25,708 nucleotides of DNA. Origin: Chlorokybus atmophyticus. Taxonomy: Eukaryota; Plantae; Mesostigma and Chlorokybus algae. The notes beneath the pieces are model-generated. The model was not told the DNA's origin. It did not search any database and worked only from the letters and a program-made list of their open reading frames with translations. The stretch covers positions 1 to 25,708 of the forward strand of contig RHPI01003079.1 in NCBI GenBank assembly GCA_009103225.1. Direction: 5' to 3'. Both the position numbers and the translations under genes were made by a program. Positions 83 through 25,708 of this stretch are shown here, piece by piece. Position 1 is the stretch's first letter. Every line of letters begins with the position of its first letter.

Positions 83-420
83 CACAGCACAACAGGTCAG
101 CAAGGCAAGGGTGATCGGCCGCCTCAAGAGGTGGTGAATTAGGTCGGGCACGACATGGCAGCGCCGACGCTGGTGACCTACCCAGGCTCTTATGCATTCC
201 GCAACGGAGGGCCAGGGCTGGTGTGGGACTCACGACACAGCAGGTTGGAAGAGCCAACAGCTGATGAGCGCGAGCGAGCGATGGGGTTCTTGTCCGGTGC
301 GACGGCAGCGCTAGGACTGAGTGAACAACGATGCCGAGTGCTGCTAGGGCAAGCCATGGACCAAAACAGCATGGTGTGGCTGATGGTTGTCTGCTTGGCG
401 GCACAAGAGTTGGCATCAGG
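83..420 (+). pseudogene. C-terminal part of a retrotransposon-borne C5 cytosine DNA methyltransferase (motif IX-X region)
   Basis: Frame of ORF 155..739 reads GDRPPQEVVN*VGHDMAAPTLVTYPGSYAFRNGGPGLVWD...EEPTADERERAMGFLSGATAALGLSEQRCRVLLGQAMDQNSMVWL. E-x-E-R-x-x-G-F...T...R-x-x-LLG-x-x matches DNMT3/DRM-type motifs IX-X (ELERIFGFP..YT...RQKLLGRSW). Catalytic motifs I-VIII are absent because of the truncation. Confidence 0.72.
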
Positions 421-649
421 CTTCATGCCGGTGCGACAGCAAGCACGTCAGGCGCCTGCGCCTCTGTCGAGGGGGTGGGAGCATGGTGTACATGATGGTG
501 AGAGTAAAGGGGTGTCTTTTTCGCCTGTGACAGCTGCAAGTGGCAAGAAAGCGGCTATAGATGGTGGCTTGAAGCTTGAGAAGCTTACCGAACAGACCAT
601 GGAGTGGTGTATGGGCGAGTGTGTGACACCGAAGCACCGTGAGCGGCAG

Positions 650-1535
650 AAGCATTATTGGCGCGCAAGCGCAACTGCTTTGCCTACTCCATCAAGGAGT
701 TGGGAGTCTGCAACTTCTACACGATGGACATTGAGTTGACCTCTCCTGAGCCCATCTTTCGTCAGCAATATCGGCTGATAAAGGTGGAGAAGGAGTTCGT
801 GTTGGACAAGTGTGCTGACTTGTTGGAGGCCGGACTCATTGAGGAGTCGACTTCAGACTTTGCGGCTGCGACAGTGCTGCTAATGAAGAAGGATGCGCAG
901 GGAAACTAGACCTCGAGGAGGATGTGTGGTGACTATCGGCCATTGAATGAGAAGACCAAGGCTGATCGCTACCCCATGCCTATCCCGAAGGCAAAGTTCG
1001 ATGACATCGGCGATGCAAAGGTGTTCTCAATTGTGGACTTGAGGCAAGGCTTCAACCGGATCGCCATTAAGCCTGAGGACCGTGGTAAGACAGCATTTTG
1101 GGGAGTAGATCAGCTCTACCAATGGAAGGTCATGCCGTTCGGCTTGAAGAACGCACCAATGAAGTTTCAGCGCGTGATGGATCGCGTGCTTCGTGGGCTA
1201 CCCTTTTGCAAGATGTTACATCGATGACATCTTGGTGTTTAGCCACACAATGGAGGAGCATCTTGTGCACTTGGAGCGCGTGTTCGAGCGCGTGCGCGAG
1301 GCCGGCATGAGGTGCCATCCGGAGAAGTGCTTGTTCGGGGCTAATCGCATCCCGTACCTGGGGCATGAGATAGTGCCAGACGGCGTCTGCGTGCAGCAAG
1401 CAAAGGTGGATGCCTTGCTGCAAGTGCCTGCGCCGACGGACATAAGTCGACTACGCGCATTTCTCGGCTTGGCGAACTACTATCGGCGGTTCGTGGAGGG
1501 GTACAGCAAGATTGCAAAGCCCTTAATGAGTTATT
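650..1535 (+). pseudogene. Reverse transcriptase domain (Gypsy), disrupted
   Basis: LLEAGLIEESTSDFAAATVLLMKKD..RMCGDYRPLN..DRYPMP..VDLRQGF..KTAF..MPFGLKNAP..F; YIDDILVFS after a frameshift at ~1207; YLGH; LRAFLGLANYYRRFV. Confidence 0.95.
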
Positions 1536-1629
1536 GAGGAAGGAGAAGGCGTGGTGCTGGTCGGAAGAGTGTCAACGCGCCTTTGAGCTTCTTAAGGAGA
1601 AGCCGTGTACTGCGCCAGTGCTGAGATGG

Positions 1630-2015
1630 GCAGACTACAACCGTCCTTTCATCCTACACACAGACTGGAGCCGCCTGGGCATAGGGGCCGTGTTGTGTCA
1701 GAAGGGTGACAATGGGAAGGAGTATGCGGTGACGTATGGCAGCCGAAGCAACAACAACACTGAGGCCAACTACAATTCCTATGAGGGGGAGTGTTTGGCG
1801 GCGGTGTGGGCCATTGTTCACTTCAAACCGTTTTTGTATGGACGTCCCTTCACGCTGATCATCGCCGACCATCAGCCTTTGGAGTGGTTAATGTGCAACG
1901 ACAAGCTTATAGGGAAGCATGCCAGATGGGCGCTCATACTGCAAGAGTATGCGTTCAGCATTGAACACCGAGCTGGTGTTGACAACATGGAAGCAGATGG
2001 GCTGAGTAGGAACCC
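1630..2015 (+). pseudogene. RNase H domain (Ty3 type)
   Basis: FILHTDWSRLGIGAVLCQ..YGSRS..EANYNSYEGECLAAVWAIVHFKPFLYG..DHQPL..RWALILQEY..EADGLSR in ORF 1534..2058. Confidence 0.93.
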
Positions 2016-2339
2016 AAACCCATCATCTATGGACGAGAGTGAGGCACGGCATGACTAAGCCATGCCCGTGGCTGAGTTTTTGGCCTTCCGTGTGGCGTCA
2101 TTGCTTGTATTGGCGGGTTCCGCAGACATGTACGCAACCACGCGCCAAAACGCAGCAGATGAGCGCGATGGTGATGGTGTTATGATGGCTTTGGCATCTG
2201 CACCAGCCCCGACGGTTGACAACGTTGATGGGAAGGAAGCCGAGGCTTCAAATGATGTATGGGGTGATGAGCAAGTGCTTGCTTACCTTAAGACCGGGCT
2301 GTTTCAAGCTGGGTGCGAACGGCGACACGTGATCGTGTG

Positions 2340-3500
2340 TGGCAACGTGCGCAACGGTTTTGGTGGGAGGGAGACCACCTTGTGCGCTTGATGCCTGATG
2401 GAGGTGTGAGGATTGTGCCTCAGCCACATGAGAGGAAGCCGCTTGTGGAGCTGCTTCTTGAGAAGATGGGCCACTTTGGTGTGAAGAGGACACTTAGGCT
2501 TGTGCAATCAGCATATTGGTGGGCTGGCATGCAGTCTACCGTGGCGGGAGTGGTCGCAAGTTGTGTGGAGTGCGAGAGGGTGAAGGCGAGCTTCAATGCC
2601 AAGCACCCACAGCTGCACCCTCTGCCAATATAAGGACTACTCTATCGATGGAGCCTAGATCTGGCCGGAGACCTACTAGTCAGCAAAAGAGGCAATCGCT
2701 ACGTGCTCGTGATGATGGAGCACTTCTCAAGAGGGGTCGAGGTGGTGGCGGTGGCGTTGCCGTTGATGGAGAGCAAGCTGGTTGCTGAGGCTTTCCTTGA
2801 CCAAGCGCTGAGCAGATTCGGAGCCTGTGCCAAGGTTCTCACTGACCAAGGCACTGAGTTTCGCGGCCAGTTCGATGACTTGTTGGCGCAAGCCTTCATT
2901 GATCATCGTAGGACTTCCCGTGATCATCCCCAAGCTGATGGGCTTGCGGAGAGCATGGTACAGGCGGTGAAGAAAGGGCTTTGCAAGTACTATCTCACTC
3001 ACAACAAGAGCGACTGGGACTTGGCGTTGCCGTGGCTAGCGATGGGCTACCGCATGACGCGAAAAGCTGCGCTGAGCTCATACAGCCCCTACTTCTTGTT
3101 GTATGGGAGAGAGCCCATACTGCTTACATCAATTAGGAGGCTGGTTGAGCAGGAGCTTGACTTGGAGGATCCCAATGTGTGGGAGAGAGAGATAGCAAAG
3201 CGTGCAGAGCTGTTTCGGTGTGTAATGCCAATGGCACTTGGCAACCTGCAAGTGGCACAACACCGCGACACGCTGCGCTATGCCAGGGTGAGGAGTGGCT
3301 TCTACAAGCCAAGACTGCAGAAGTTTCAGCCTGGAGACTTCATCTATCTGCAGAGGAAGACCAAGGACACATTGGGCACGAGTGCGAGTCGCACCATTCT
3401 ACGTGTGAAGAAGGTCCTCAGCAACGGAGTGTTGTTGCTGGAGGGAGCTGATGCCCGCACTACCAAGGAGCACATGAAGAACTGCGCTTCTTGTCATCTG
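2340..3500 (+). pseudogene. Integrase (zinc-binding H2C2 remnant, DDE core, C-terminal extension), disrupted
   Basis: GHFGVKRT..YWWAGMQ..CVECERVK; WSLDLAG; TDQGTEF; HPQADGLAESMVQ; SPYFLLYGREP; FQPGDFIYL in ORFs 2313..2633 and 2703..3575. Confidence 0.92.
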
Positions 3501-3557
3501 CCCAACGTGGATGACCACGTGGATCCGTCGACGGCAATACCAGGTGTGGATCACCGT

Positions 3558-3692
3558 TGTGAGCGGTGTGGTTGAGCAGACGGCTGGGACACCATGCTGC
3601 GGTGCGACAGGTGTGTTGCCGGTTGGCATATGGAGTGCCTCCGCCCGCCACTAGATGAAATTCCTGATAGGGCATGGTACTGTCCGGCATGT
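3558..3692 (+). pseudogene. PHD finger at the integrase C-terminus
   Basis: Reading through TGA at 3573: CERCG*ADGWDTMLRCDRCVAGWHMECLRPPLDEIPDRAWYCPAC, a complete C4HC3 pattern with P..W.CP.C; frame ends at TGA 3708-3710. Confidence 0.92.
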
Positions 3693-3749
3693 ATGAGTAG
3701 TAGCGTGTGAATCAGCTGCAGGCGCACGAGGACGTTGGCGCTCAGCTGC

Positions 3750-4776
3750 AAGGGGTGGTGACACGCATCTTTCATGTGTATGTGTATACCTCGTGAGATG
3801 AGTGGTAATTTGAGACAGCACAACAGTGTTTCATGGTGTACAATAGCATGCTGACATGCATGGCAAGGAGGTTGTACGACGAGTTCAAGCAACGAGGAGT
3901 GAAGGCACGACATATGCTTCTGTCAGCACTCGCGCCTCTTAGGACTGCGAGGGATCTTGTTGGGATTTGTGTAATGGTTGTAGATGGTGGACTTTGCAAT
4001 GCCATGCTTCTCGCTTGCCTCCCTAATGGCCCCTGCCTTCACATCATCCACAGCCATGGCAACCTGTACATTATATAATCATGCCACGCCCATGTTATTA
4101 AAGAGAGCGCATGTGCGTTACGTGAGCCCCACAGCCTGTCGCAGAGCCTTCTTGCTGCGACCCCTTAGCCTCTTCAGGCTGCACGGAGCTGAAGGTGTGT
4201 TGGCAGAGCGTTAGTTGCTCTCCATAGGGGTAGACTCCTGCGCCCACAAAGCAACACAGTCAACCACACAAAGCCACTCGCATACACACGCAATGTCATG
4301 GTATTGGTCACCGTCCGCGAAGTCTCCTCGACCATGCCTATGTAGCCAGGCATTCGCGCTTGCTATTTGCGTGATGATCGCGCGGCGTACGACTGCCACG
4401 GCGGTTGTGAGTCGTGGATACCATTGTAGGTGTCTCCATTTTGGCTTAGCTCAAACTGCATTGAGTTCCAACGGTTCCGTCGATTGAACTCACAACTAGC
4501 CATTGCTTTCTGACAGCACAGATGTAAGTAAATGCGGCTGTACTATAAGTAGCAAACTTAGCCATATTGTTACTTAAAACAACTATGAGTTTAACGAAGC
4601 AAAAGGCCTGATCAACGCCCCAACCTCTACAATACAAAGCCTACACATGAGCTTGGTGTGTTTGCGATTGTTGTGTATGGATGCGGAGCACACAAATTGC
4701 CTTTGCCGCACACACTAGTTGCGCGTGCTCACATTGCTGAGCATACACTCCCATCTGTCAGGGTCTTACCATCACA
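3750..4776 (+). repeat. Candidate polypurine tract and 3' LTR of the Gypsy element
   Basis: Short purine run AAGGGG(TGG) at 3750 followed by TGACAC; non-coding sequence follows; possible end near GGGTCTTACCATCACA (~4761-4776). No second LTR is available to confirm. Confidence 0.25.
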
Positions 4777-6365
4777 CTTCTTAGTAGCACCCATAGCTCC
4801 TACTTAATAGGGAACATACACACATACACGTGCGTCTTGCTATCAAGGGAAGGCCCTGTGAGCACAGCACCTAGGTAGGTGGCTTGTTGGCTTGCTGCCT
4901 ACATAGCTTCCTCTACACTTAGCTATGCTAGGTGGGAGCTCTTTTCAGCTGAGTTCGTATGTCTACAACAGCCTCGGCCTTGCGTACAGCGATAACATCA
5001 TCATCGCGCACACCATCAGCAACCAACAACCACATCCTCGAGAAGGACCAGCCCTCGTGGACGCCCGGCCCGACAGCAGTAAGGTCAAGGGGTGATGATG
5101 ATAAGCCACTCCCTGAGCCCCAAGTTCAACTGCACACTTGTGGTAGGCATGCAGGTATAGTGTAACCAGCAACAAGACAACCTTGTAGACTAGCATATGC
5201 GTATGCCATGTGCTGCATCCCCATACCTTTGCAGTTTGGGAGTCATCTTGTGTTGATTGCCGCGCGCGTATAACCACCATTGCACTTGCTTTCCATAAAA
5301 GCACACTCACTCTCACTCTTAACACCTCCCTCGCACCCCCAACGCCACAAACCCTTCACACAACACAATATACCTCAATTGCACATTTACAGCAACTGTA
5401 ATTATTTTGAACGACTAAAATCACACATATACATTGCCCGCCACACTTTTTTAAATAAGTTTGGATTGTTTGAAAACAAACCAAGTTAGGGGTGTATGAT
5501 GCACAACAAGGGCTAAAAGCAGCCTCAGCAATGCATATTTAGATAACTACACTACCTCCGTTTGATAGTTCAAAGTCAACCAAACCTTGCACACACTTCT
5601 GCCACCCACTGCTTGGTGGGCTCCCATGGCGCCAATACTTGCAGAATGGGCTACACCTTTATTCTCCACCCCCATTGGCCACTAGGAGCACACCTATACA
5701 CCGTACACCACCGTTGGCCGCCAATACAATGCACTAGGTAGGCCAAAACAGGTTATAGCATTGTCCGAAATAGGGCATTACTACACTATACCTAGCACAT
5801 TCGCCGTCATCGCAACGCACGATCAGCACCAAGGTCACACACTCCTCAGCGTGTAGTCACTAGGGGACCTACTTCAACATGCCTCGAGATCACATCCTGA
5901 TCACTGAAGACCGCTTTCATCGCACGCCCAGTTCTAATCGAGCGAGCAGCTTGCTATTACTCTGGTTTCCGGCTGTTATCAGCATTCCAGCGCCGTTATC
6001 GTACGATCTTACATGTCGTACTACGCCTCTGACACTGCCTTGCGGACAAGCGTTATTGCTTGCACGCTATTTGTCTATCAGCTTTCAGGCGAGTATTCTG
6101 AATACGTGCCTGAGGCCGGCTGTCGGCAGAGTAGTACGACATGCCTTGGATAGTACAATACCAAGAACCGCGCGTGTCACGGGGCATCATTGTTTCTTGC
6201 CGTCGGGGCAGGGAGTGTGGGCGTTGGGGGCGTTGGGGTTTGGGGGGGCGAGGTTGTGGCTGTCCGCGCATGCCAGGCGGGGGGCGCTGATGCGACACCT
6301 GTGGCCTGCCTTGCTTGCAAACACCGGAGCCGCTGAGCTGCGCGCCGCTAGCAGAGTCTGGGTGC

Positions 6366-6366
<1 letters not shown>

Positions 6367-6410
<44 letters not shown>
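6367..6410. repeat. (TC)22 microsatellite
   Basis: Perfect TC dinucleotide run ~180 bp upstream of the ATG at 6593. Confidence 0.95.
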
Positions 6411-6413
<3 letters not shown>

Positions 6414-6592
6414 CCTATATCTGCGCGGGTTGACCCCCGCTCTGCATGCTTTAGTGGTGGTATGCGCTCTCTGCGATTGGTTTGCCCATGTGCACGCCCG
6501 CACTCATTTCATCCCCCACTTCTTGCAGCAAGAAGAGCGTGTGTGGAGGACCTTGCGGTTTTGACGCGACAACAGGGAGCGCGTAGACAAGC

Positions 6593-9167
6593 ATGGCGCT
6601 GATGCGCGTGGTGGCGCTGATGCTTTTTCTGCTCGTCCAACCCCTCGCTGCAGGTGAGAAGAAGGACGAGCGAGGCACTGCGCGTGCCTGGTACCCCTCC
6701 TCCTTCCCTTCCTCTTCCGAGGAGGAGGAGGAGGAGAGTACCTCTCTTTGCATGCATGCCAGTGTGTTGGCTTTCCTCTTTTATTGCACCAACTAGGCTC
6801 GCTTCTCGGTGCTGACGTCTTCACCCATACGTTGTGCAGCTGCCACGGCTGTAGTTGCTGGACGATTGTTCTGCGACAAATGCAACAGCGGCATCCAAGT
6901 CCCCATCTCGCGCGGCAAGGTATGCTCCGGTACTAAGGGCAGGCAAGTCCCCTCAGCAGTGGGTGGAAGCCTGGGCTTATTCAGTCAAGGCGCCATGTAT
7001 ATCCATACGTTCTTGACATGTTTTTTCTGCACGTGTGAGAGAGTGAGCCCAATCTCATCTGGTTGACATATCATGCACGTGTGCAGGTGGTGCTCAATTG
7101 CACAACTTATGTCACTATCGACACGACGTATGATGATGACTACTATTACGCGTCCAATCCGGTTGTGTTGAACTCCAGCCAATCGACGCTTACGAATGCA
7201 GACGGCACCTTCAGCTTTGACAATGTCTATATGACAGACCAATACGTTGCAAGCTTGTATAACAGCTCTGTGCCGCCTTTCTCAGACTATTACAGAGTGT
7301 TCTTCCCAGTGCACTGCAACGTGTACGTGCCTGCATCAGCGCCATGCACTGCTGCGGCCATCACCTACCCTATCAGCAACAATGTAGACTGCACGAGTCG
7401 GATAGGAAGCCCTCTTTCTGCCCCTTACGAGGCTTCTCCAAGCCTCGCTTCCGTGTTCAGTCCACAGGATGCCTCCACTTACGCCCTTGGCAACTTTTGC
7501 CTTGCGCCGGCGCAAACACCTTCACCGCCGACGTGCCCGTTTCCCTCCGCTGCGCCCTCACTGCGACGGCTGTTCTACACCAGACCCGTCCCCGCCGGCA
7601 GCCAAGCAAGCGATGAGTTCGGACGGAGGTTGGAGATTGCCTTCTGGAACGATGCAACTGGCCGTAGTGTAACGGTGCTTGAAGCCTGCACCCTCCCTTA
7701 CTCTCCTCACAGCGTGGAAGCCGTCGACCTTTCTCTAAGCAAGTTTGGTGGTTACGCTAGCACCCTTCAAGTCGTAGGAGGTACGTGTGTGAGCACAGAG
7801 GTGCGCATATGAAGCAATGCCAACATGCCTGCTTGAACCGAGCGTATGGCAGAGAACCTTTACTTCTTGGGGCGCAACTGCTCCAGCCACACTGTGGGGG
7901 TGTTTCGCAAGCCTGCGGCATGGCATCCTGACCGCTATCAGCGCAACACGCGCTTTGCCCAACCCGTTCTCATCAATGCCAACTACACTTACTACCACAC
8001 GTTTGCTGTTGATGTGGACGGTGAGAAAGCTTGGGAGAGCGCGAGGAAGCGCGCAATGCATTGTACAGGTAGCTTATAGCTCTCTTGTGGTGCTCAGCTC
8101 TCGGAAAGGAGTATGTGTACTTCTCGGCGCTATCACCGATTGGAGGTGGTGGCAACTCGTTTGTCACGCATTTTGCCGTTCAGACTGCCACCTGGCGCCA
8201 GGCGGTACTCCTGGAAGTGTATGATGATTACGAGTATGAAGGCGTACAAAGCCCAGGGGCTGCATGGGTTTCGTTGTACACCATTCAGGTTGATTCCGCA
8301 GGTGCGTGTGTAACAGTTCAGGTCAAAATAGAGTGTGGAGAACAATAACAGCACAACTCCCCTCGGCCGTGATGGCTATGCACAGAGGCGCTCTCCTTGA
8401 TAACGGTTGACTTCAATGCGTTACTCTTAAATGTGGTTGTGTTGCGTGGCTTGCAGCGACGCCGCACAGGGTGTGGTGGGGTTGGCGGGACGACTCTGCC
8501 GCATATCAGTCCTGCTCCGTCAGCTATGGAGACATCTCTCCCGATCATCGTTCCATTACAAACCAGCAGCTATGGGATTATTGTGTTGATTTGCTGTCTA
8601 TCGACCAAGGTGCACATACACACGCACGCATGCGCACTGGCGCCAACAACCATGATGCGTAAGCACTGCTCATCGCATGGTTAATGACAGTCCATGGAAG
8701 GCTGTTTGTGTTACACGATGGGTACTTGCTCGACGGGCCAAGGCTGTCAGTATTCAACATATCTGGAGAAGGCCCTGTCCCCATCCTCAGCAATCGCCCA
8801 CTTGGGATCAGTTTTGCAAAGACCATAGCATACTACGCTCCAGCAAGTATATACCCCCCCCNACACACACACACACACACACACACGCACACCACCACCT
8901 CTCACTCCCCTCTCACACGCAATTGTCAACGCAGACTACCTGTTTTTCAGCGTGCCGAATTGGTTGAACTTTGGCAGCAGCGATGCAACAGCGTATGTGG
9001 AATTGTCACAGCTGGTGGGCAAGGCGGAGCTTGACGCTTGTCTTGCAGTTTCTGGCAGCAGCGATGAAGACCAGCCGTGTGCTGCAACAGGTGTTGCCAC
9101 TAGTGGCAACCGTCCCGTCCACATTGTGACTCCCCCCCCGGGCGGCAGCATCGCCCTGTTCTATTGA
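6593..9167 (+). CDS. Secreted protein, ~582 aa: signal peptide, Ole e 1-like Cys domain, Pro-rich linker, putative beta-propeller; 8 exons
   Basis: Exons 6593-6653, 6840-6919, 7087-7780, 7853-8020, 8098-8301, 8457-8609, 8691-8846, 8935-9167 all have GT-AG ends and consistent phases, with no stop. Signal MALMRVVALMLFLLVQPLAA; VAGRLFCDKC..V.LNC..T.ADG.F..C..C resembles Pollen_Ole_e_1. Further 3' exons (~9320-9945) are possible. Confidence 0.72.
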
Positions 9168-10690: not shown

Positions 10691-13040
10691 CTGCGGAGGC
10701 ATGCGGCACCCGTATCTCTTGATTGGTATGGAGTGATTCGGGTGCCATCCCCGGGTTCATGGCCTGCACAGCGTCAACAGAGACCCCCAACCTGTTCGCT
10801 ATGATCGCGAAAGCGTCTCCTTGCTGCACATTGCAGGCAGTGCCGCCTGCTGCTGCCCGCTATTCACCCCCCTGTGGCGGTACGGGCAGGGGCGTGGATG
10901 CGTGCACAGCTCGAACTGGCGCGAAGGTGATCACATTGCCCTCCATGGACCGGTTGCTAACGCAATACCGTTGTCGTAACCAAGTTGTCGTAACCAAGCG
11001 CCCCGTTTCTCCTAAAGTATCCTTTGCCCAAGAACACAACCATGCGAAACGCACCCCCATTGCCCATCGGCGCCAACAATTTTTCCAAGCCACCACGAAG
11101 CTGCACTCGAAATAGAGATGCAAGTTCCAGCATGCAATGTTGACGACTCTTAGCCAGTATGTAATCTGGGCCTTTTCGACCATCATCTGCATATGTTACC
11201 AACAATTAAGTAATGACGCACACTCACATGTGCACACATACAAGTGTACAAAAGAACATTGACGGAATGTGTGTACACATATGCACACATGCGCGCAAGC
11301 ACCGACCAGTGTAGCAGCAGCTGAGCGAATGTAACAATCGTCGATTCACCCAAGCACACATGCTCCCACATGCGCGCACGTGCACAACCAGTGCGTGCGC
11401 AACAGCCAGCCCATGCATGCCTTGTGGTACAGTCGATAGGTCTACCTACTCACGTTACTATGCAACAGACTTCTGATTGTGGTGCAACAGTACAAGCACT
11501 CTCATCTGGCATGGGCGTTCTCTGCCGATGCGGTCCGAGTCAAGGCTGATCTTGTCAGGCCAGCTTATGGCAAAGTTGGTGACGGGGCAGGGCAGGACTT
11601 TCAAGCCCTCCTGCTCCAATGCCCTCCAGGCAGGCTGATTGGAAAATAAGCCGAGAAGGACGTCCTCCACTGTTGCCTCGGTCGATGTCACGTGCACGCG
11701 TTCCCTTTCGCCGGCTATTTCGCCGCCTGCTGCTGCCCGCCGTGGTGCAGCGGGCGCGGGCACAAGTTGAACCAGTTCTTCCTGAAGTATGTTGTACTAA
11801 TTGCTGCCGACCTCATCCGCGTCAAACGCCTGCAACACCACGTCCCCACAATCGTCCTTTGGCACCTCCACCTCCAAGACATCCCTCAGTGTCACCTGCC
11901 AAGAAACGGTTGGACAAGATGACAACGGGAGCGGTCAATGCAAGTAGACACATATGCATACGGGTAAACTAGGCTGGTACGCGTCTCTTACCTGACCATC
12001 ATCATGTGACTAGAAACTGTCTTGAATGACGAGCTCCTGGCGATGCACGCTTCTAGTAGAATGGGCGTACAGCTTGGCGTCGAGCAAACGCTTGCCATAC
12101 ACAAAAAAGGAGCAAATCTGGCCAACTTCATGGTCATCTGTAACACAACACCAGCGCATGAAGCAGCAGCCTGCAAACATTCACCAAGGCAGCACTTTCA
12201 CTTCAAGTGCAAGGTGCTGGCGCGCCCACGCCTGCCATGAAGCCCGTTGATGAAGCTATATGCTAATGTCGGGCAAACTCATGCATAGCAAGCCATCTAG
12301 CAAGCAAACGAAGCAGATGTCTACTTGTTGGCTGACGTCTCCATCTAAGCCATTACTACCTCAATAACAGACGGCGCTTGCTGGAGCGAAGGGGGGAAGG
12401 CATGCTATCCAACATGGCGCGCCCGAGCTTTGTCTCCGTGCTGTCGCCGAAGCTGCACACGGAGGCAATGTTAGCGGAGGCAGCAGTAGCACTGCAAGGG
12501 GGTGGCTCGCTTGCTGCCACCAAAGGGAGCATCGCACGAATTCTGAGCCAGGCAGCAAGCTAGCACAATAGAAAGAAAGCGCTCAACTCTGCATGCATGC
12601 GGGGCTGCGTGTTCCCTCTTCTCTTGCTTACCTTGACGGCAGGAAGGCAGGGCGGCAAGCGCACGGCACAACGGCGGCTGCCATGGCAATCTCGGGTGTC
12701 GTCGGCGAGGGCCAAGGAGAGCGGCAGCACTAGCTGCCGCAACCGCGAAGGCTGGAGCGAGCGATGACTCCAAGGCGGGGGAGCCTGCCTGGTTAAGTAG
12801 GCGCCGCCTCGCCGCAGCCATGCGTGCAGGATGCAACGGGACGCCCACCAATATGCTGCGCTCCGCTCTCCATATGCCCCATGCCCAGCAGGACGCCGCC
12901 TTCCTGCTGCATCCTGCGGGCCAGGAGGAACAGGATGGCAGGAAGGCTGGCGTCGTAGAGCTTTCCTGCCTGTGGCTTTGTGAGTGCCCGTGGCCCCACC
13001 AGCTGACATCTTCGTACACGCCGATATACATCGCAAACGG
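10691..13040 (-). pseudogene. Decayed multi-exon gene containing a LysM domain
   Basis: Phase-0 exon-like blocks with GT/AG ends (~12563-12360, ~12230-11992, ~11896-11455) carry in-frame TAG/TGA stops; LysM is in the block ending at donor 10691. The 5' boundary is uncertain. Confidence 0.45.
10704..10835 (-). pseudogene. LysM domain
   Basis: CNVQQGDAFAIIANRLGVSVDAVQAMNPGMAPESLHTNQEIRVP fits Y.V..GD....IA...GV....L...NP......L...Q.I.VP; an in-frame TAG lies just upstream at 10860-10862. Confidence 0.8.
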
Positions 13041-15612
13041 TGATGATATCAATGACGCGTTCTGCAGACGTGACGCACCCCGCAGTCACTAAGTCTCCGT
13101 CTTACCGAGTTAGATTATGCTTTAACCTATATAAGCATGGAGTCTATCCATAATTTCTCCTTTTGCATGTTAGACTGCATTGCCTTGCACAGTCACGTGT
13201 TGTAGTTACTGTGGCTATTTCAGGCATCTTTGAAAATATAACTGCATAGCTAGCCTATTAAGATCAGCATAAAGGCTAGTATAAAAGACGTAGTGGTTCA
13301 CTGTTTACTTGGTTTAACCCAAAAGCGATTGCTCAGGCTTCTCGCTGCAATACATTAAGTTTCGTGACTTGTGTTTGCTTGTATTTGTGTTGCACGCGTG
13401 TGCACACTTTTATATGCTCAATATGCTTGCCTTAATACATGTTTTTTAGTATGTCAAAGCTGGACATGGATATCGTACGAACGATCCAGATCAAACGAGG
13501 TCCGATCCAACGGCATGCGCGGCAATTTTTGTCCGATGTCACACCGGACTTTGCCGGTCGCGACCTGTACTTTCATCATTTGTGCTTCATGTAACACTTA
13601 TATTGTAAGTGTTTGAGGGTATTCTCACCCTCTATTCTCTTAGCTCTTATTCTTACTACTACACCACAGAAAGTAGGTGCATAGGGTTTTGGTGGACCCA
13701 CTCTCTGTGGTGACGGCCCCTCGCTTCTTACAGCTTTCCTATCGCATCCTGCATCATGTCACAGATTCAATCGAGGCTTCCAACTTGTTGTGCGGGAAGC
13801 CTGCTGCAGAATGCCGGTTCCCACTACACCACGCGATTGATTGCGACAAATCATTCATGTAACGTTACGGTAGAATTCCTTGTTACAGTCAAATCTAATG
13901 CTTACATGCAACATTTTTGCCAGACAATAGAGTAGTGCAACTCCGCCCTTGTCTACGATCAATGTCATTCTTATATCAACATTACTTTAATATATGTGTA
14001 AAATGATGAAGGCTTGACATGGAGGCAATGAGCCTGATCAACCTCCTCGTAGGCCTCCTGAGAGACTTGCAGCTTGCGCATGTTGCGAGAGAGTATCTGC
14101 TCAAATCGACTATGCCCAAGCCCTTGCTCGATGTCATTCTCAAAGCAATTATTATTTTTATCAATGTAAAAATTTTTCGTCTGCTCGTTAAGTGTGACTT
14201 GGCTTTTGCCAACGAAAGTATCATTAATTGTTAAAAAGGTACCTTATTTACTCGGTCACGGTGCCCCCCCATTATGATTACCCTCTTAAGTTTCATGGGG
14301 GCACACTATTAGGCTGCACTATACCCTTTTCTCGTATATAATGCCCCCTTGCTATAAGGTTACGCAAAAATGCAATAGATTACATATTTATTACGATTGT
14401 GTTATGGCTTTTTTTGTGTTGAATACTATAAATTACAGTCAATCAGTGTAATCTTGATTTTTAACAATGCCCCGTTTGATTGGAGTGCCCCCCAAATACA
14501 ATTAACACCCCCCCCCCTCTCCCCCACAAATTTTAAAAAGGGCATATCTTGAAAGGCGGGCATTGGAACGGGTATGTACGTAAGACTGTGTATTGTACCT
14601 AGCGGATTACCAAAGAATGCAATTATGTCGAGTATGTCATTGCTATGCGATACGTATCAACTTCACCTACCAGCACCTCATCTAGTAGCTGCATGTCCCA
14701 GCAGTGGTTTGATGAGGACTTCATAAGCAAGGTGGTTGTCAAGCAGAGTGCATCGGGCGTTTGCAAGCATGTTTGTTTGCTAATTAATTGCAAATCTCTG
14801 CATTTAGAACAAGAATTAAGGGTTGGGGTCATTCCATAGTGGATGACGGTGGTGATGGCGGCGGTGGTTAACCGCGGCGTGGCGCCATTCGTGCGCTAAC
14901 GATCAACGAGGGGGAAGAGNGTTGTTTCTTGCCTTGTCACGCCTGCCAGCAGCCATTCGCAGGCAGGGGCGGCAACCGGCACACCAAGTTATAAGTCTTT
15001 TCGTTGAAAAGCCTGCCCGTGTGTAGAAGAAAACACAACTTCGGGAGAAGACTCTCGAGAATATCGTGCCTTACGAGCTCGTGCGTTATGGTGTCGGACC
15101 CATTTGTCCTTAACATGCTATGTATTATAAAAGTACAGGTGTACGGGTGTAACAATCACCCTGACCATTGCAACTCACGCATTCGCATTCACAAATGGTA
15201 TAAAAATAATACACCGTGTGCGTGACGCTCTGCAATTCCTGACTCAGGCTGTATGTATTCCTAGCTTGCTCATGAGTAAGGGGATCAAGAGGCTAGATGC
15301 AATTTGAATAGATGTATCAACTAAGCCTTGCCACCATGTAAACTTGAATAAGAGAGGCAATAGCATGCGCACACTGAATGATGATGAACAACAACTGATG
15401 AAGCTAAGGGATCAATTGCACAGCGCAAGCAATCAAGCACAAGTACGTATAACACTGGTGCGCATGTGCGTGAATACACTCAAGCAAAGCCAGCACGCAT
15501 ACACAAGCACAACAAGGAATCAGACTGACGGTATGGAAGAATAGCTGAGTTGCTGCGGTTTCACTTGAACACCAGCTGTCTCATGTCTCAGGGAAATATA
15601 CAGCTGCACATA

Positions 15613-15614
<2 letters not shown>

Positions 15615-15645
<31 letters not shown>
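15615..15645. repeat. (AT)n microsatellite
   Basis: Perfect AT run. Confidence 0.95.
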
Positions 15646-15649
<4 letters not shown>

Positions 15650-18075
15650 CGAGCAACTGGCGGTTACATTAACAACCGTTAAGCTGAATTTGTAACGCCA
15701 TGGCCATACTTCTTCAAAGCCTCCCACTCTTTCTTACGCCTGTTTATCTGCGTGCCGAGTTCCCGGCCATAATGTCCGCGGGCTTTTGCTTTGATGGATT
15801 CGCCATGTCGGCGGCGCTTGGCCTTCCTCCGCCGGCCATGTTGTGCCACTGCTGCAGTTCCTCGGGATCGACTACTGCGGTCGATATGTGCTCCTAGCTA
15901 ATGGGTGTGCACTGGCTGTAGGAATCAGCTAAGGTCCTTCTACATTGAGGGCCCCTCGCATGACAAGAGCTCGTGACGCAGCCCACCCTCACTCTTAACA
16001 ACAACATCCTCAACAGCCACCATCATGTGCATCAGCATGCACAGCTGCATGTCAAAGAGTGCCGATACACACCCACCTCCAGCATTTGAAGCACCTCCAG
16101 CGTAGAGTGATCAGTCTTGGGCGTTGGACAAGAGGTTTATGGGATGATGTGGCAGCCTCAGACATGAGTTGATGGTTGATGTTCATCCTCTCCTTCCTTG
16201 GTGCGGTGCTGTGACTTCCCCTGCAAGGTACTGCGCCGGTGATGCTGGTAGGGCTTCCAGTAGTATGTCCTTGTGTTTAAGTTTACCAAGCGACCCACCA
16301 AGTAAGTGAATGGTATTGTCGCATATTATGTTAGGGTGTGACTATTTCGGTTGGTTGGACTGGAATAGGTACACGTTCTTGAGTAGGATTGAACTTTATG
16401 TTTCAACACTGCCCGCAATCCATAAGCAAAACAAACCTTGCTCGCACTTAGCAACGGTGAGTGCCGACCTTTGTGTGAAAATGCATGCTGCGTAGTGATT
16501 GTGATTGAACAACTATGGATGTTCATGCGCACGCTTGTGGCCGTGTATTTGTGTCGTGTGTATATGTGAGTTGTGCGCGTATGTTTGCTGATGTTACCAC
16601 ACTAGCTACCATACCATGGATAGCACCCCCTTAACACTCTCCCCCTCCGCAGGGAGTGCATGCACCTCACACTTGAGGGGCACACAGTCTAGATTGCGCG
16701 CCTCTCAGACGCAGTCGGCGGGCCCTCCACATCGCTCACAGAGTAGTGGTAGCTCTCCACATAGCATGCCGGTGCGTGCATGTTGCCGGACGGGCTCGCA
16801 GCGGTGTACGCCTCATAGATGGAATTCTAGTCTTATATTGCTTTGACAAGTACCCGCTCCTGTTGACGGCAACGAACTCTGCCTCTGACGGCAATGGCGG
16901 TCAGGTTGGGCGTCTGTCGCACAGTGTACGTGGCATGTAGTGGTAGTTGTTGTAATGGTACCTCGTCAAGGTGCTCAAGGAGTACCTATCCGTCAACTGC
17001 TTGCAGTATGTGTGTGACAGTTGCAACAGTTTGCATACAATGCGCACTACGTCTCTCACCACGCTCCATCTGTACAGTATGTTGCGCGTGTCCACGGGGG
17101 GAGCACAACCGTTCGCGCGTGTCATCGTCACCGACACGTCCTGCGACTGTGGGAGAGCGGACGTCAGTTTATGCGTGTGTGTAAGTGGGGAGGAGTCTTG
17201 GCCTATACATGTGCCCCGTGCATCTTTGTGTGCCCCATGTGTATGTTTGTGCCCTGGTATGTGTAGGCGCGCTCGTGTATGTCGTGGGCATGTGTAGGTG
17301 AGCAGATGTGCAGGCGGGTTTGTTCGTGTGCTATTGACTGCATGCAAGTGCTAGTGTCTCAAGGGCTTGACACCTGCTTGCACATGCGCATATGATGTGA
17401 GTGCTGACACAGCCACCCACGCTCCATCTTCACACATGCATAGCTGCAGTGCAAGCGTATACTGTATCCGCTGTGGATGTTCCCAAGGAGGCTTGTCCAA
17501 TTGCCTGATAGTTTACTCTGCGGTAGGCCGCGCCCACAACAGTTGTCGTGACGACTCCACGGGAAGTCTGCACATACAATTGCTCAATAGCATGCTGCAC
17601 CACGGCAATCATCGCAATTATTACCCATTATTGTTGTGCTTTGCAATATCACCAACCCCTAGCCCTCACCACACTGCTGTCCCAGCAAACTTCCACGTGC
17701 CAACAAATAGGGCATAGCCCTTCTTGTGGTACTACGTTGTTGTATGGATCAATGGGGTTGGTTTGGTTGAAGATGTGCGAATTGTGCTTCAACACCAGGC
17801 CTGATGGGCGTGCGACCGTCATCATTATCTTGTACACTCATCTGACTTGCTGCAGGTACGATGACAACTACAGAGGTATGTATGTATGTATGTATGTATG
17901 TTGACCTCACACCTTGTGTTGCACGTGCCTCTGTCACGCTGCCCGTCACGTTGACCATGGCAAAGTCTTGGAACAACAACAGGTTGGTATCCACCTGCTG
18001 GTGCAAGCAAGGGTATGAGCACATGTGTGTCTCTCTATGCGCAAACGTGTGCATGTGCACAAGTTGATGTAGGGC

Positions 18076-19131
18076 ATGCACCTGCAATACCAACCAATGC
18101 TATGCTGTAGCCCTGCATCTATATGTATTAGGCGGATATGTCTCGATGGCACGGAAGGCGATGCTATGGGAGCGGTTCGCCATCGTTGATGACGCTCACA
18201 AAGGGTGTCATGTCCACGCTAAAGCTCTTGACGACAACCGCGGGTGCATGAAAGTCCACATTGTCGCTTTGGGCGAAGGCCACGCCGCACACGCCCCCGT
18301 CGAACAGTATGTTTAGCGCAAAGGGTGCGTACGCGTGTGTCGTGTGAGGGAACATCGCCTTCACCTAATGCGCGTAAAAAAAGCTAAACCTTAAACATGC
18401 GTGCATGTAGGATCACTGCACGTGCGCATGCGAGTATGTATGTATGTATGTATGTATGCACGTACCTTCAGGACAGCGGTGCGAGTGCTGGTGGGTGCCG
18501 AGAAGGTGATGGCACGGGTGGTTGTGATTGTGGACGTATATGACGCAACCACGCGTGGTAACACTGCTGTGCGCCATGCATACAGGGGCACAACACGGTG
18601 AGTAGCATCCGCGTTGGGCGGGTATGCCGTGTGTTGACTGGCGCAGAATATTGCGCTCACAGTCACGTTGTATTGCAAGTTGTCAACATGGTTGCTTGGA
18701 TACTCCACATACCCCCGCAGCTCCCCCTTTTTACTGAGAAGAGCAGAGTACTGCGCACACGTGCACCTTTAATGTATGTGTGTGCGTGCGTTCCCAGCAT
18801 AGACACGCAGATGTGCACGCGTTTGCAACAACAAGCATATCTGTGATATGTTGTTGGCAAGCTGGAACCAATGGTTCTTGGACTTGGACTTGGACTGGTC
18901 GGATGCAACCGCCTAAGGCCGCTGAAAGCTTTCTAAATCCAGGGCCGTGAAACAACAACCAACTCTTCACACTTGCACCTGTTGTATTGATACAGAGAGT
19001 ATGTGTTGTAGTTGCTGCCATGGCTGTAGTGTTGTTGGTGTCGAGGTGGTATATATATGTACACATGCAAGCAGCCTTATGGGCACTCTCTGTCAAACAG
19101 CTGCGCCCGTGGCAACATACGCAGATGCACA

Positions 19132-19163
<32 letters not shown>

Positions 19164-19535
19164 CACACATATACACAAGCACACGTGCCCCCGCCCCCGT
19201 CCCCCACACACTCATGCATGTACACGCACACACACACGCACACACCTTGCAGCCAGATGCTAAGGGTAAGAGGTGGGGTGAAGGTGGATGGAGTGGGCGC
19301 GTATTGCACTCGCATGGTTAGATCCACACGCGCCCAATTGTTGTTGTACTGATTGCCGGTGCATTTGTTGTTGCAGGTGGGGAGCGAGTACGTGGTGGAG
19401 ACCGAAGGTGACGACTTCGTGAAAGAATGACGCAGCAACACCAACTTGCAAGAAGCTGTCAGCAACGGCGTGGACGGCGCCGGCCTCGATAAATACCATT
19501 CCTGCGCGCGCGCGCACAAAGAGAGAGCTGTTTGT
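18076..19535 (+). repeat. Copy A of a >=1460-bp direct duplication (offset 6173 bp)
   Basis: The ORF track repeats exactly at +6173; the (TATG)6 and (GCAC)8 lengths are identical in both copies. Confidence 0.95.
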
Positions 19536-19693: not shown

Positions 19694-20064
19694 GGTCTAT
19701 ATTTTTGCTCTGAGCTATATTGTTTATTTATTTTTAAATTGGAACTACTGATTTACAAATAATGTATAATACTGAGTTTACCGTTCAACGCCAAATTACA
19801 TTACGGTTAGCTTTTTTTGCTTCTTTTGCCTTTAAAGTGCCTATGGTCCCCGTTCACAATTGGCTTCCTGAAGCTCACGTGAAAGCTCCGACCGCCGGAT
19901 TAGTAATATTGGCTGATATTTTACCAAAATTCGGTACTTACAGATTCCTTCGATTCTCTATTGCAATTTACCCGGAAACTACTTTATATTTTACACCTTA
20001 TACTATGAGTGTAAATGCTATCATATACACTTCATGAACTGCTTTAAGCCAAATCGATCTAAAA
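19694..20064 (+). pseudogene. nad4: NUMT: mitochondrial nad4 fragment inside intron 1 of the PNGase A-like gene
   Basis: AT-rich; reads [102 protein letters not shown], matching plant Nad4 but with stops and substitutions. Confidence 0.93.
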
Positions 20065-24248: not shown

Positions 24249-25304
24249 ATGCACCTGCAATACCAACCAATGCTATGCTGTAGCCCTGCATCTATATGTA
24301 TTAGGCGGATATGTCTCGATGGCACGGAAGGCGATGCTATGGGAGCGGTTCGCCATCGTTGATGACGCTCACAAAGGGTGTCATGTCCACGCTAAAGCTC
24401 TTGACGACAACCGCGGGTGCATGAAAGTCCACATTGTCGCTTTGGGCGAAGGCCACGCCGCACACGCCCCCGTCGAACAGTATGTTTAGCGCAAAGGGTG
24501 CGTACGCGTGTGTCGTGTGAGGGAACATCGCCTTCACCTAATGCGCGTAAAAAAAGCTAAACCTTAAACATGCGTGCATGTAGGATCACTGCACGTGCGC
24601 ATGCGAGTATGTATGTATGTATGTATGTATGCACGTACCTTCAGGACAGCGGTGCGAGTGCTGGTGGGTGCCGAGAAGGTGATGGCACGGGTGGTTGTGA
24701 TTGTGGACGTATATGACGCAACCACGCGTGGTAACACTGCTGTGCGCCATGCATACAGGGGCACAACACGGTGAGTAGCATCCGCGTTGGGCGGGTATGC
24801 CGTGTGTTGACTGGCGCAGAATATTGCGCTCACAGTCACGTTGTATTGCAAGTTGTCAACATGGTTGCTTGGATACTCCACATACCCCCGCAGCTCCCCC
24901 TTTTTACTGAGAAGAGCAGAGTACTGCGCACACGTGCACCTTTAATGTATGTGTGTGCGTGCGTTCCCAGCATAGACACGCAGATGTGCACGCGTTTGCA
25001 ACAACAAGCATATCTGTGATATGTTGTTGGCAAGCTGGAACCAATGGTTCTTGGACTTGGACTTGGACTGGTCGGATGCAACCGCCTAAGGCCGCTGAAA
25101 GCTTTCTAAATCCAGGGCCGTGAAACAACAACCAACTCTTCACACTTGCACCTGTTGTATTGATACAGAGAGTATGTGTTGTAGTTGCTGCCATGGCTGT
25201 AGTGTTGTTGGTGTCGAGGTGGTATATATATGTACACATGCAAGCAGCCTTATGGGCACTCTCTGTCAAACAGCTGCGCCCGTGGCAACATACGCAGATG
25301 CACA

Positions 25305-25336
<32 letters not shown>

Positions 25337-25708
25337 CACACATATACACAAGCACACGTGCCCCCGCCCCCGTCCCCCACACACTCATGCATGTACACGC
25401 ACACACACACGCACACACCTTGCAGCCAGATGCTAAGGGTAAGAGGTGGGGTGAAGGTGGATGGAGTGGGCGCGTATTGCACTCGCATGGTTAGATCCAC
25501 ACGCGCCCAATTGTTGTTGTACTGATTGCCGGTGCATTTGTTGTTGCAGGTGGGGAGCGAGTACGTGGTGGAGACCGAAGGTGACGACTTCGTGAAAGAA
25601 TGACGCAGCAACACCAACTTGCAAGAAGCTGTCAGCAACGGCGTGGACGGCGCCGGCCTCGATAAATACCATTCCTGCGCGCGCGCGCACAAAGAGAGAG
25701 CTGTTTGT
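24249..25708 (-). pseudogene. Copy B of the duplication: 3'-truncated second PNGase A-like copy (exons 2-5), runs off the window
   Basis: Appears identical to 18076-19535, including the stop/frameshift lesion; begins right after a poly-G tract. Confidence 0.85.

Follow-up and report, generated by a model that had tools for sequence, protein, structure and literature searches.

The first lines of contig RHPI01003079.1 from Chlorokybus atmophyticus, studied here as a window of 25,708 nucleotides (the whole stretch of DNA that was analysed), carry the broken remains of the pol region of a Ty3/Gypsy retrotransposon, in which a segment related to C5 cytosine DNA methyltransferases (DNMTs) precedes the reverse transcriptase (RT) and a PHD finger closes the integrase (IN) (Table 1). 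The stretch 84-3710 is very probably a dead Ty3/Gypsy relic cut at its 5' side, derived from a clade whose pol region carries a DNMT of the DNMT3 type between the protease and the RT and in which the IN terminates in a PHD finger.

The pol remnant and its decay

Matches to Pfam profiles between about 840 and 3700 on the forward strand recover the Ty3/Gypsy order of RT, RNase H (RH) and an IN of the DDE type with an H2C2 zinc domain, followed by the PHD finger; the initial annotation had proposed, from the letters alone, a Gypsy element with an RT and an IN that ends in such a finger. These domains are distributed over all three frames, and piecewise comparison with relatives reveals at least four frame changes and at least five in-frame stops, one of the latter within the PHD finger; the coding part runs to a terminal stop at 3708-3710. 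The PHD finger scores 39.2 bits against PF00628, for which the cut-off is 24, and the claim that the IN ends in a full C4HC3 finger holds for its zinc ligands, all eight of which are present, but not for its reading frame. It occupies the place at the C-terminus of the IN where a chromodomain was also considered and rejected, no chromo-family match being found by Pfam in 2634-3707.

Table 1. Features of the Gypsy remnant and its immediate surroundings in the window
Feature	Position	Strand	Basis
Broken Ty3/Gypsy pol remnant, 5' truncated; order DNMT tail, RT, RNase H, integrase, PHD, terminal stop	113..3710	+	Domain matches and relatives
DNMT3-type C5 cytosine methyltransferase, C-terminal remnant covering roughly the final quarter of the domain (motifs IX-X)	113..412	+	Relatives
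Reverse transcriptase, RVT_1	844..1372	+	Pfam, E 7e-15 and 1e-11
RNase H, RT_RNaseH / RT_RNaseH_2	1537..1962	+	Pfam, E 4e-33 (RT_RNaseH)
Integrase, H2C2 zinc-binding domain and rve catalytic core	2409..2951	+	Pfam, E 3e-16 (Integrase_H2C2) and 7e-10 (rve)
Integrase C-terminal extension	2952..3557	+	With the core, 44-60% identity over ~315 aa to PHD-bearing relatives
PHD finger C4HC3, eight zinc ligands kept, one internal in-frame stop	3558..3692	+	PF00628, E 7e-10
Telomere-type tandem repeat, 13.8 perfect copies of CCCTAA	1..83	.	Left-chromosome-end orientation
Neighbouring 44-aa open reading frame, borderline HTH_psq	3923..4057	-	Pfam, E 5e-4, 20.2 bits against a cut-off of 20.4

What is left of the methylase is its C-terminal end. 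Only the last ~90 residues of a domain of ~330 residues remain, so that roughly three quarters of it are gone, the S-adenosylmethionine-binding and catalytic motifs included: motifs I, IV (with the catalytic Cys) and VI (ENV) are not present in the window copy. Neither gag, nor an aspartic protease (PR), nor the N-terminal part of the DNMT was found anywhere in the whole window, and the possibility that a second copy of the element or the missing half of the DNMT lies elsewhere within it was rejected, as none was found there. Truncated, broken and left with only motifs IX-X, the window copy encodes no methylation writer, and on this point the initial annotation, which had credited it with one, does not stand. 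Depletion of CpG, as a possible sign of methylation, does not set the remnant apart, its observed/expected ratio being 0.75, with no difference from its flanks (0.68-1.01). The window copy is a dead relic, incapable of function.

Identity of the methylase-like stretch

The motif on which the initial annotation based its reading of DNMT motifs IX-X upstream of the RT is present in the second frame of the forward strand. A HMMER search of 1.84 billion representative proteins with the 198-residue translation of 143-736 returned 476 matches at E<=1e-3, each a cluster at 50% identity in public data, of which 104 reach E<=1e-10 and the best has an E of 5.6e-25, a level well outside what chance would give; all of them cover residues 5-90 of the piece, corresponding to 155-412 of the window. 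A word-indexed protein search with the DNMT-like piece gave nine matches. The window stretch keeps those columns that vary little or not at all among 15 aligned sequences.

Where the relatives are long, the stretch lies directly behind the region matched by PF00145, the DNA methylase family, which scores 46-51 bits in these proteins against a cut-off of 22; in P0031 and P0152, for example, PF00145 covers residues 978-1226, the stretch 1208-1314, and RVT_1 begins at 1421. A profile built from nine relatives with the whole domain finds DNMT3A with an E of 5.5e-17. The alignment consists of three colinear stretches, and the third places the conserved ERE..G and LLG blocks on the final ~45 residues of the DNMT3A catalytic domain, i.e., on motifs IX-X. 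Plant DRM2 and M.HhaI are partial matches only to the same profile, and the motif order is therefore that of an unrearranged DNMT3; a rearranged DNMT of the DRM type was considered and rejected, the order being colinear with DNMT3A. The AlphaFold model of the relative P0065 has a mean predicted local distance difference test (pLDDT) score of 77.7 and is confident up to residue 317, with the stretch included. It superposes on DNMT3A, DNMT3B and DNMT3C with target-normalised template-modelling (TM) scores of 0.70-0.75 over 312-324 columns for chains of 285 residues (E 3e-12). Judged by these sequence and model comparisons, 113-412 of the window is the tail of a DNMT3-type domain, an identification made by way of the relatives rather than by a direct match. 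The proposal of motifs IX-X in front of the RT is in this way upheld by the 476 relatives and the DNMT3A profile, but it extends no further than the short tail, which by itself has no direct profile match.

Architecture and hosts of the relatives

The organization from which the window copy decayed can be read from its relatives. P0152, encoded on an 11.9-kb metagenome scaffold (L001), is a single open reading frame (ORF) of 2327 residues with a zinc-knuckle Gag, an aspartic protease, a DNA_methylase domain, RT, RH and IN; gag and protease are likewise present in P0031 and L003. The last of these is a contig of 9.3 kb and, among full-length relatives, the nearest: it shares 60-63% identity with the window copy in its DNMT tail, RT, RH and IN and 55% in the PHD finger. 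It has an open stretch of 1359 residues spanning Gag, PR and DNMT, a single stop, and then 1043 residues with RT, RH, IN and PHD in the same frame. Among 57 metagenome loci fetched by means of the tail motif, the order PR-DNMT-RT-RH-IN is found in nearly all, with a PHD finger too in at least 10, and most of these loci are decayed. A search with the RH piece gave matches that are all metagenome proteins, the best at 62% identity, and the relatives that can be named come from Spirogloea muscicola, Marchantia polymorpha, Calypogeia fissa and Chromochloris zofingiensis.

A second design, RT-RH-DNMT-IN-PHD, was found among the 150 best representatives and is carried by an open stretch of 1576 residues in L033. 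In a neighbour-joining tree of the methylase domains the two designs form two clean clades, a split that is only indicative since the tree has no bootstrap. The window has the first design (type A), with the DNMT before the RT, and its RT is nearest to that group; its IN tail and PHD finger are also close to the group with the DNMT after the RNase H. A G-patch domain (PF01585) occurs as one more accessory module in P0032, P0062 and P0229, and in the first of these, which has the DNMT after the RNase H, it lies just past the methylase. In L033, a 71-bp unit is repeated three times in tandem at 5547-5765, the repeat length being reported as 77 nt.

A DNMT3-type domain thus lies inside the Pol frame in the family, as seen in P0152, L003 and L033, with the window keeping its tail only, and motifs I, IV and VI are kept in that frame in intact relatives, as the initial annotation had anticipated. 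The counts behind this statement come from 46 relatives with a near-complete methylase domain. The catalytic Cys and the Glu of ENV are present in 100% of them, as are both Glu residues of motif IX, the Asn of ENV in 96%, and the key Gly of motif I in 93%. The idea of a writer, an integrase and a reader joined in one polyprotein is likewise borne out by the relatives, in L033 and, with one stop, in L003, but not by the window copy with its broken frames.

The PHD finger is conserved as well. All eight ligands are kept in 16 of 17 PHD fingers, and among representative proteins all 15 that extend 260 residues or more beyond the IN core end in the finger. P0152 runs 257 residues beyond its IN core and has no PHD finger, and since it is the one fully open relative of type A, the pairing of DNMT and PHD is not obligatory. 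Among solved structures the nearest PHD fingers are those of CHD4, WSTF, KMT2D, ORC1b, ATXR5, UHRF1/2, AIRE and PHF21A, several of which read the unmodified tail of histone H3, as the ADD domain does.

Weighing the evidence

Several observations weigh against reading the locus as the remnant of a DNMT-bearing Gypsy element. The 198-residue piece 143-736 has no PF00145 match at E<=1 in Pfam, so that the match predicted by the initial annotation for 83-420 did not materialize, and the PDB was searched in vain both with the DNMT-like piece alone and with a profile made from 15 sequences of the stretch. The assignment to the DNMTs is therefore transitive, since the stretch alone reaches neither PF00145 nor the PDB. 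No long terminal repeat (LTR) is demonstrable at the window copy, the 5' one being lost and the 3' one not delimitable from a single copy. In the family at large, the residue preceding the catalytic Cys is Glu in 57% of the 46 near-complete methylase domains and Pro in 39%, and Glu in this position departs from the canonical Pro-Cys of C5 methylases; as far as sequence can tell, not all relatives are necessarily active enzymes. A Gypsy-type DNMT also gave an inconclusive methylation result in yeast (PMC5890265).

The transitive nature of the assignment gives an opening to the idea that 155-412 is an ordinary conserved linker in the pol of a Gypsy clade, whose ERE..GF and LLG blocks resemble motifs IX-X by chance. 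In addition to the empty Pfam and PDB searches, it can draw on the fact that the segment by itself contributes only 1.8-4.6 bits to the DNMT3A alignments. Every relative that extends upstream, however, has the stretch contiguous with a PF00145-positive region, and where the whole methylase block sits after the RNase H rather than before the RT the stretch moves along with it. The stretch is moreover colinear with the end of DNMT3A and lies inside a confidently folded domain that superposes on DNMT3A and DNMT3B. A chance linker is accordingly a very improbable account, and one that these data have already largely refuted.

Still less credible, to the point of being negligible, is a fragment of a host DNMT3 gene lying beside an unrelated Gypsy insertion without the two ever having formed one gene: in the window copy the RT is read in another frame than the DNMT tail, and of the DNMT only this tail is present, but the same order and spacing recur at more than 40 independent loci, the single ORF of P0152 joins Gag, PR, DNMT, RT, RH and IN, and the window RT, RH and IN share 60-63% identity with those of L003, whose DNMT tail, at 61%, is second only to that of L002 (62%). 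The segments in 113-3710 are best seen as parts of one former element with a DNMT3-type domain in its Pol.

Boundaries of the remnant

On its 5' side the Gypsy remnant is cut by a (CCCTAA)n array, the junction falling between bases 83 and 84. Upstream of DNMT motif IX, this array stands in the place of the 5' LTR, gag, the protease and DNMT motifs I-VIII. The repeat in 1-83 is of the human type. The rule reported for the telomeres of the green lineage is TTTAGGG or TTTTAGGG, and the hexamer unit CCCTAA differs from the unit reported for streptophyte algae (PMC3622300). The named relatives and the nad4 fragment described below are nevertheless in keeping with a host of the green lineage, and no sign of a human contig was seen. 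In the simplest reading, the chromosome end broke or eroded within a resident element and was then capped by telomere repeats; an assembly join at 83/84, instead of natural capping, is a less simple alternative.

The 3' side is less sharply drawn. The region past 3710 has no repeat partner anywhere in the window, the DNA of 3708-7000 has no similarity to any relative, and an LTR pair for the family was found neither in the window nor in L001, L003 or L033. The GC skew turns negative near 3900-4050. The short ORF with a borderline HTH_psq match that lies close by on the reverse strand (Table 1) could derive from a different mobile element, perhaps a DNA transposon, abutting the Gypsy remnant, in which case the 3' limit of the latter would fall before ~3920.

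Other features of the window

Pfam searches of 10 long ORFs and 44 further ORFs outside the element gave only a fragment of nad4 and one weak match to PAN_4 (E 0.0016), and scans of the window for Rfam families and tRNAs had no match. Two copies of at least 1460 bp, at 18076-19535 and 24249-25708, are 100% identical, with a spacing of 6173 bp, and the second continues past the window's last base. A very young element with this pair as its LTRs would explain them, as would a segmental or tandem duplication; the interior between them has no match to the Gypsy-DNMT relatives, and the five long ORFs scanned there gave only the nad4 fragment in Pfam. This fragment, an open stretch of 91 residues on the forward strand at 19762-20037, just past the first repeat copy, matches mitochondrial nad4 (PF00361, E 1e-15), is nearest among solved structures to land-plant Nad4 (E 3e-34), and is a nuclear copy of mitochondrial DNA. 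In 13000-16000 the G+C content falls to 0.43-0.47, compared with 0.50-0.58 in the rest of the window; the ORFs there are all short, none of them reaching 85 residues, and no recognizable feature was found.

Comparison with known systems

Klebsormidium nitens is a known host of Gypsy elements with a DNMT3 in their Pol, and Symbiodinium of DIRS elements that carry one (de Mendoza et al. 2018, PMC5890265), and "streptophytes (Gypsy-DNMT3)" are treated as known in a recent preprint (bioRxiv 10.64898/2026.05.21.726589). The family described here resembles KnitGypsy-Dnmt3, compared by its description, in being a Gypsy element of the green lineage with a non-rearranged DNMT3 in the Pol ORF and catalytic residues kept in intact copies. 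It differs from the published element in its PHD-ended integrase, its two domain orders and its hosts Spirogloea, Marchantia, Calypogeia and Chromochloris; the text of PMC5890265 and its text supplements make no mention of a PHD finger in Gypsy-DNMT3 elements. SymbioDIRS-Dnmt3 from the same study likewise has a DNMT3-type domain in a retrotransposon Pol, and there too two domain orders coexist, but it is a DIRS element with a tyrosine recombinase rather than a DDE integrase, and its host is a dinoflagellate. It is for this DIRS-type DNMT3 that de novo CG methylation has been shown (PMC5890265).

A parallel may also be struck with chromoviruses, in which a reader of histone tails is fused to the C-terminus of the Gypsy integrase. 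The chromovirus chromodomain is accepted as a device for targeting integration, as cited in PMC6673714; the reader in the present family is a PHD finger, not a chromodomain, and targeting by it is putative. The PHD finger, for its part, turns up repeatedly as an accessory domain in mobile elements and is frequent in those of green algae, especially Chlamydomonas, with carriers that include CR1 long interspersed elements and several retrotransposons and DNA transposons of Chlamydomonas, as cited in PMC8557442 and PMC6673714; among the cases cited there, those examined do not pair the PHD finger with a cytosine methylase. A closer likeness in concept is found in the EpiLTRs (bioRxiv 10.64898/2026.05.21.726589), LTR retrotransposons that join a DNA methylase and a chromatin-reader domain. 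Their DNMT, however, is sister to DNMT4 and is accompanied by an adenine methylase (DAM) and a chromodomain, while the present family has the DNMT3 type, a PHD finger and no DAM. Among cellular enzymes, animal DNMT3A/3B, whose catalytic domain is joined to ADD/PWWP readers, are the best match of the family methylase in both sequence and fold, with motifs I to X in an order that is not rearranged, unlike that of plant DRM2. Identity to them is nevertheless only ~20%, and in DNMT3 an ADD domain lies beside the catalytic domain, whereas the element has a classical PHD finger ~1000 residues away, on the integrase.

Possible function and evolutionary significance

In intact relatives, Gag, PR, DNMT, RT, RH, IN and, in many cases, PHD are read in one frame. 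The DNMT of such an element may methylate cytosines of the element's own cDNA or of nearby chromatin, and the PHD finger, at the position that the chromodomain holds in chromoviruses, may tether the integrase to histone H3 tails and could thereby bias the landing sites of new copies. Neither methylation nor tethering would be within reach of the window copy, whose upstream part has been lost to the telomere array and whose remainder is full of frameshifts and stops.

For the family, as opposed to the window copy, the initial annotation went further and took writer, integrase and reader to be one unit that mimics the combination of DNMT3 with ADD and allows pre-silenced or chromatin-aimed insertion. 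This might be favored by the co-occurrence of DNMT and PHD in two lineages of different domain order, by the regular terminal placement of the finger and the near-universal retention of its ligands, and by the presence of readers of the unmodified H3 tail among its nearest solved counterparts, CHD4, WSTF, KMT2D and others. On the other side stand the fully open P0152, which lacks the finger, and the arrangement in type A, where DNMT and PHD flank RT-RH-IN at a distance of ~1000 residues and probably end up on different cleavage products. Such a unit is therefore unlikely, and the likeness to the logic of DNMT3 and ADD is an analogy only.

Since Gypsy-DNMT3 elements have been known since 2018 and the PHD finger is a known accessory domain, the element adds to an already known type, with the pairing of DNMT and PHD, the two positions of the DNMT and the wider host range as modest additions. 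A broader picture can be offered tentatively, at somewhat less than even odds: Gypsy-DNMT3 would be an old clade of the green lineage, spread over the chlorophyte Chromochloris, the zygnematophyte Spirogloea, liverworts and many metagenome contigs, with a habitual pairing of DNMT and PHD and two sister designs, and its elements might both choose their chromatin and mark their DNA, the window contributing a host with a human-type telomere repeat.

The remnant itself is no working example but a dead piece of a transposon, of an ordinary kind, at the end of a chromosome. Retrotransposons that carry the silencing enzyme of their host are rare, and their place in the conflict of genomes with genomic parasites is puzzling, with few lineages described, and the 476 clusters that share the Gypsy-DNMT3 tail indicate that this design is common, that it extends beyond streptophyte algae, and that it comes in two domain orders, usually with a PHD finger. 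These relatives provide a natural set of sequences for asking, by surveys of methylomes and insertion sites, whether self-marking or aimed insertion occurs in such elements.

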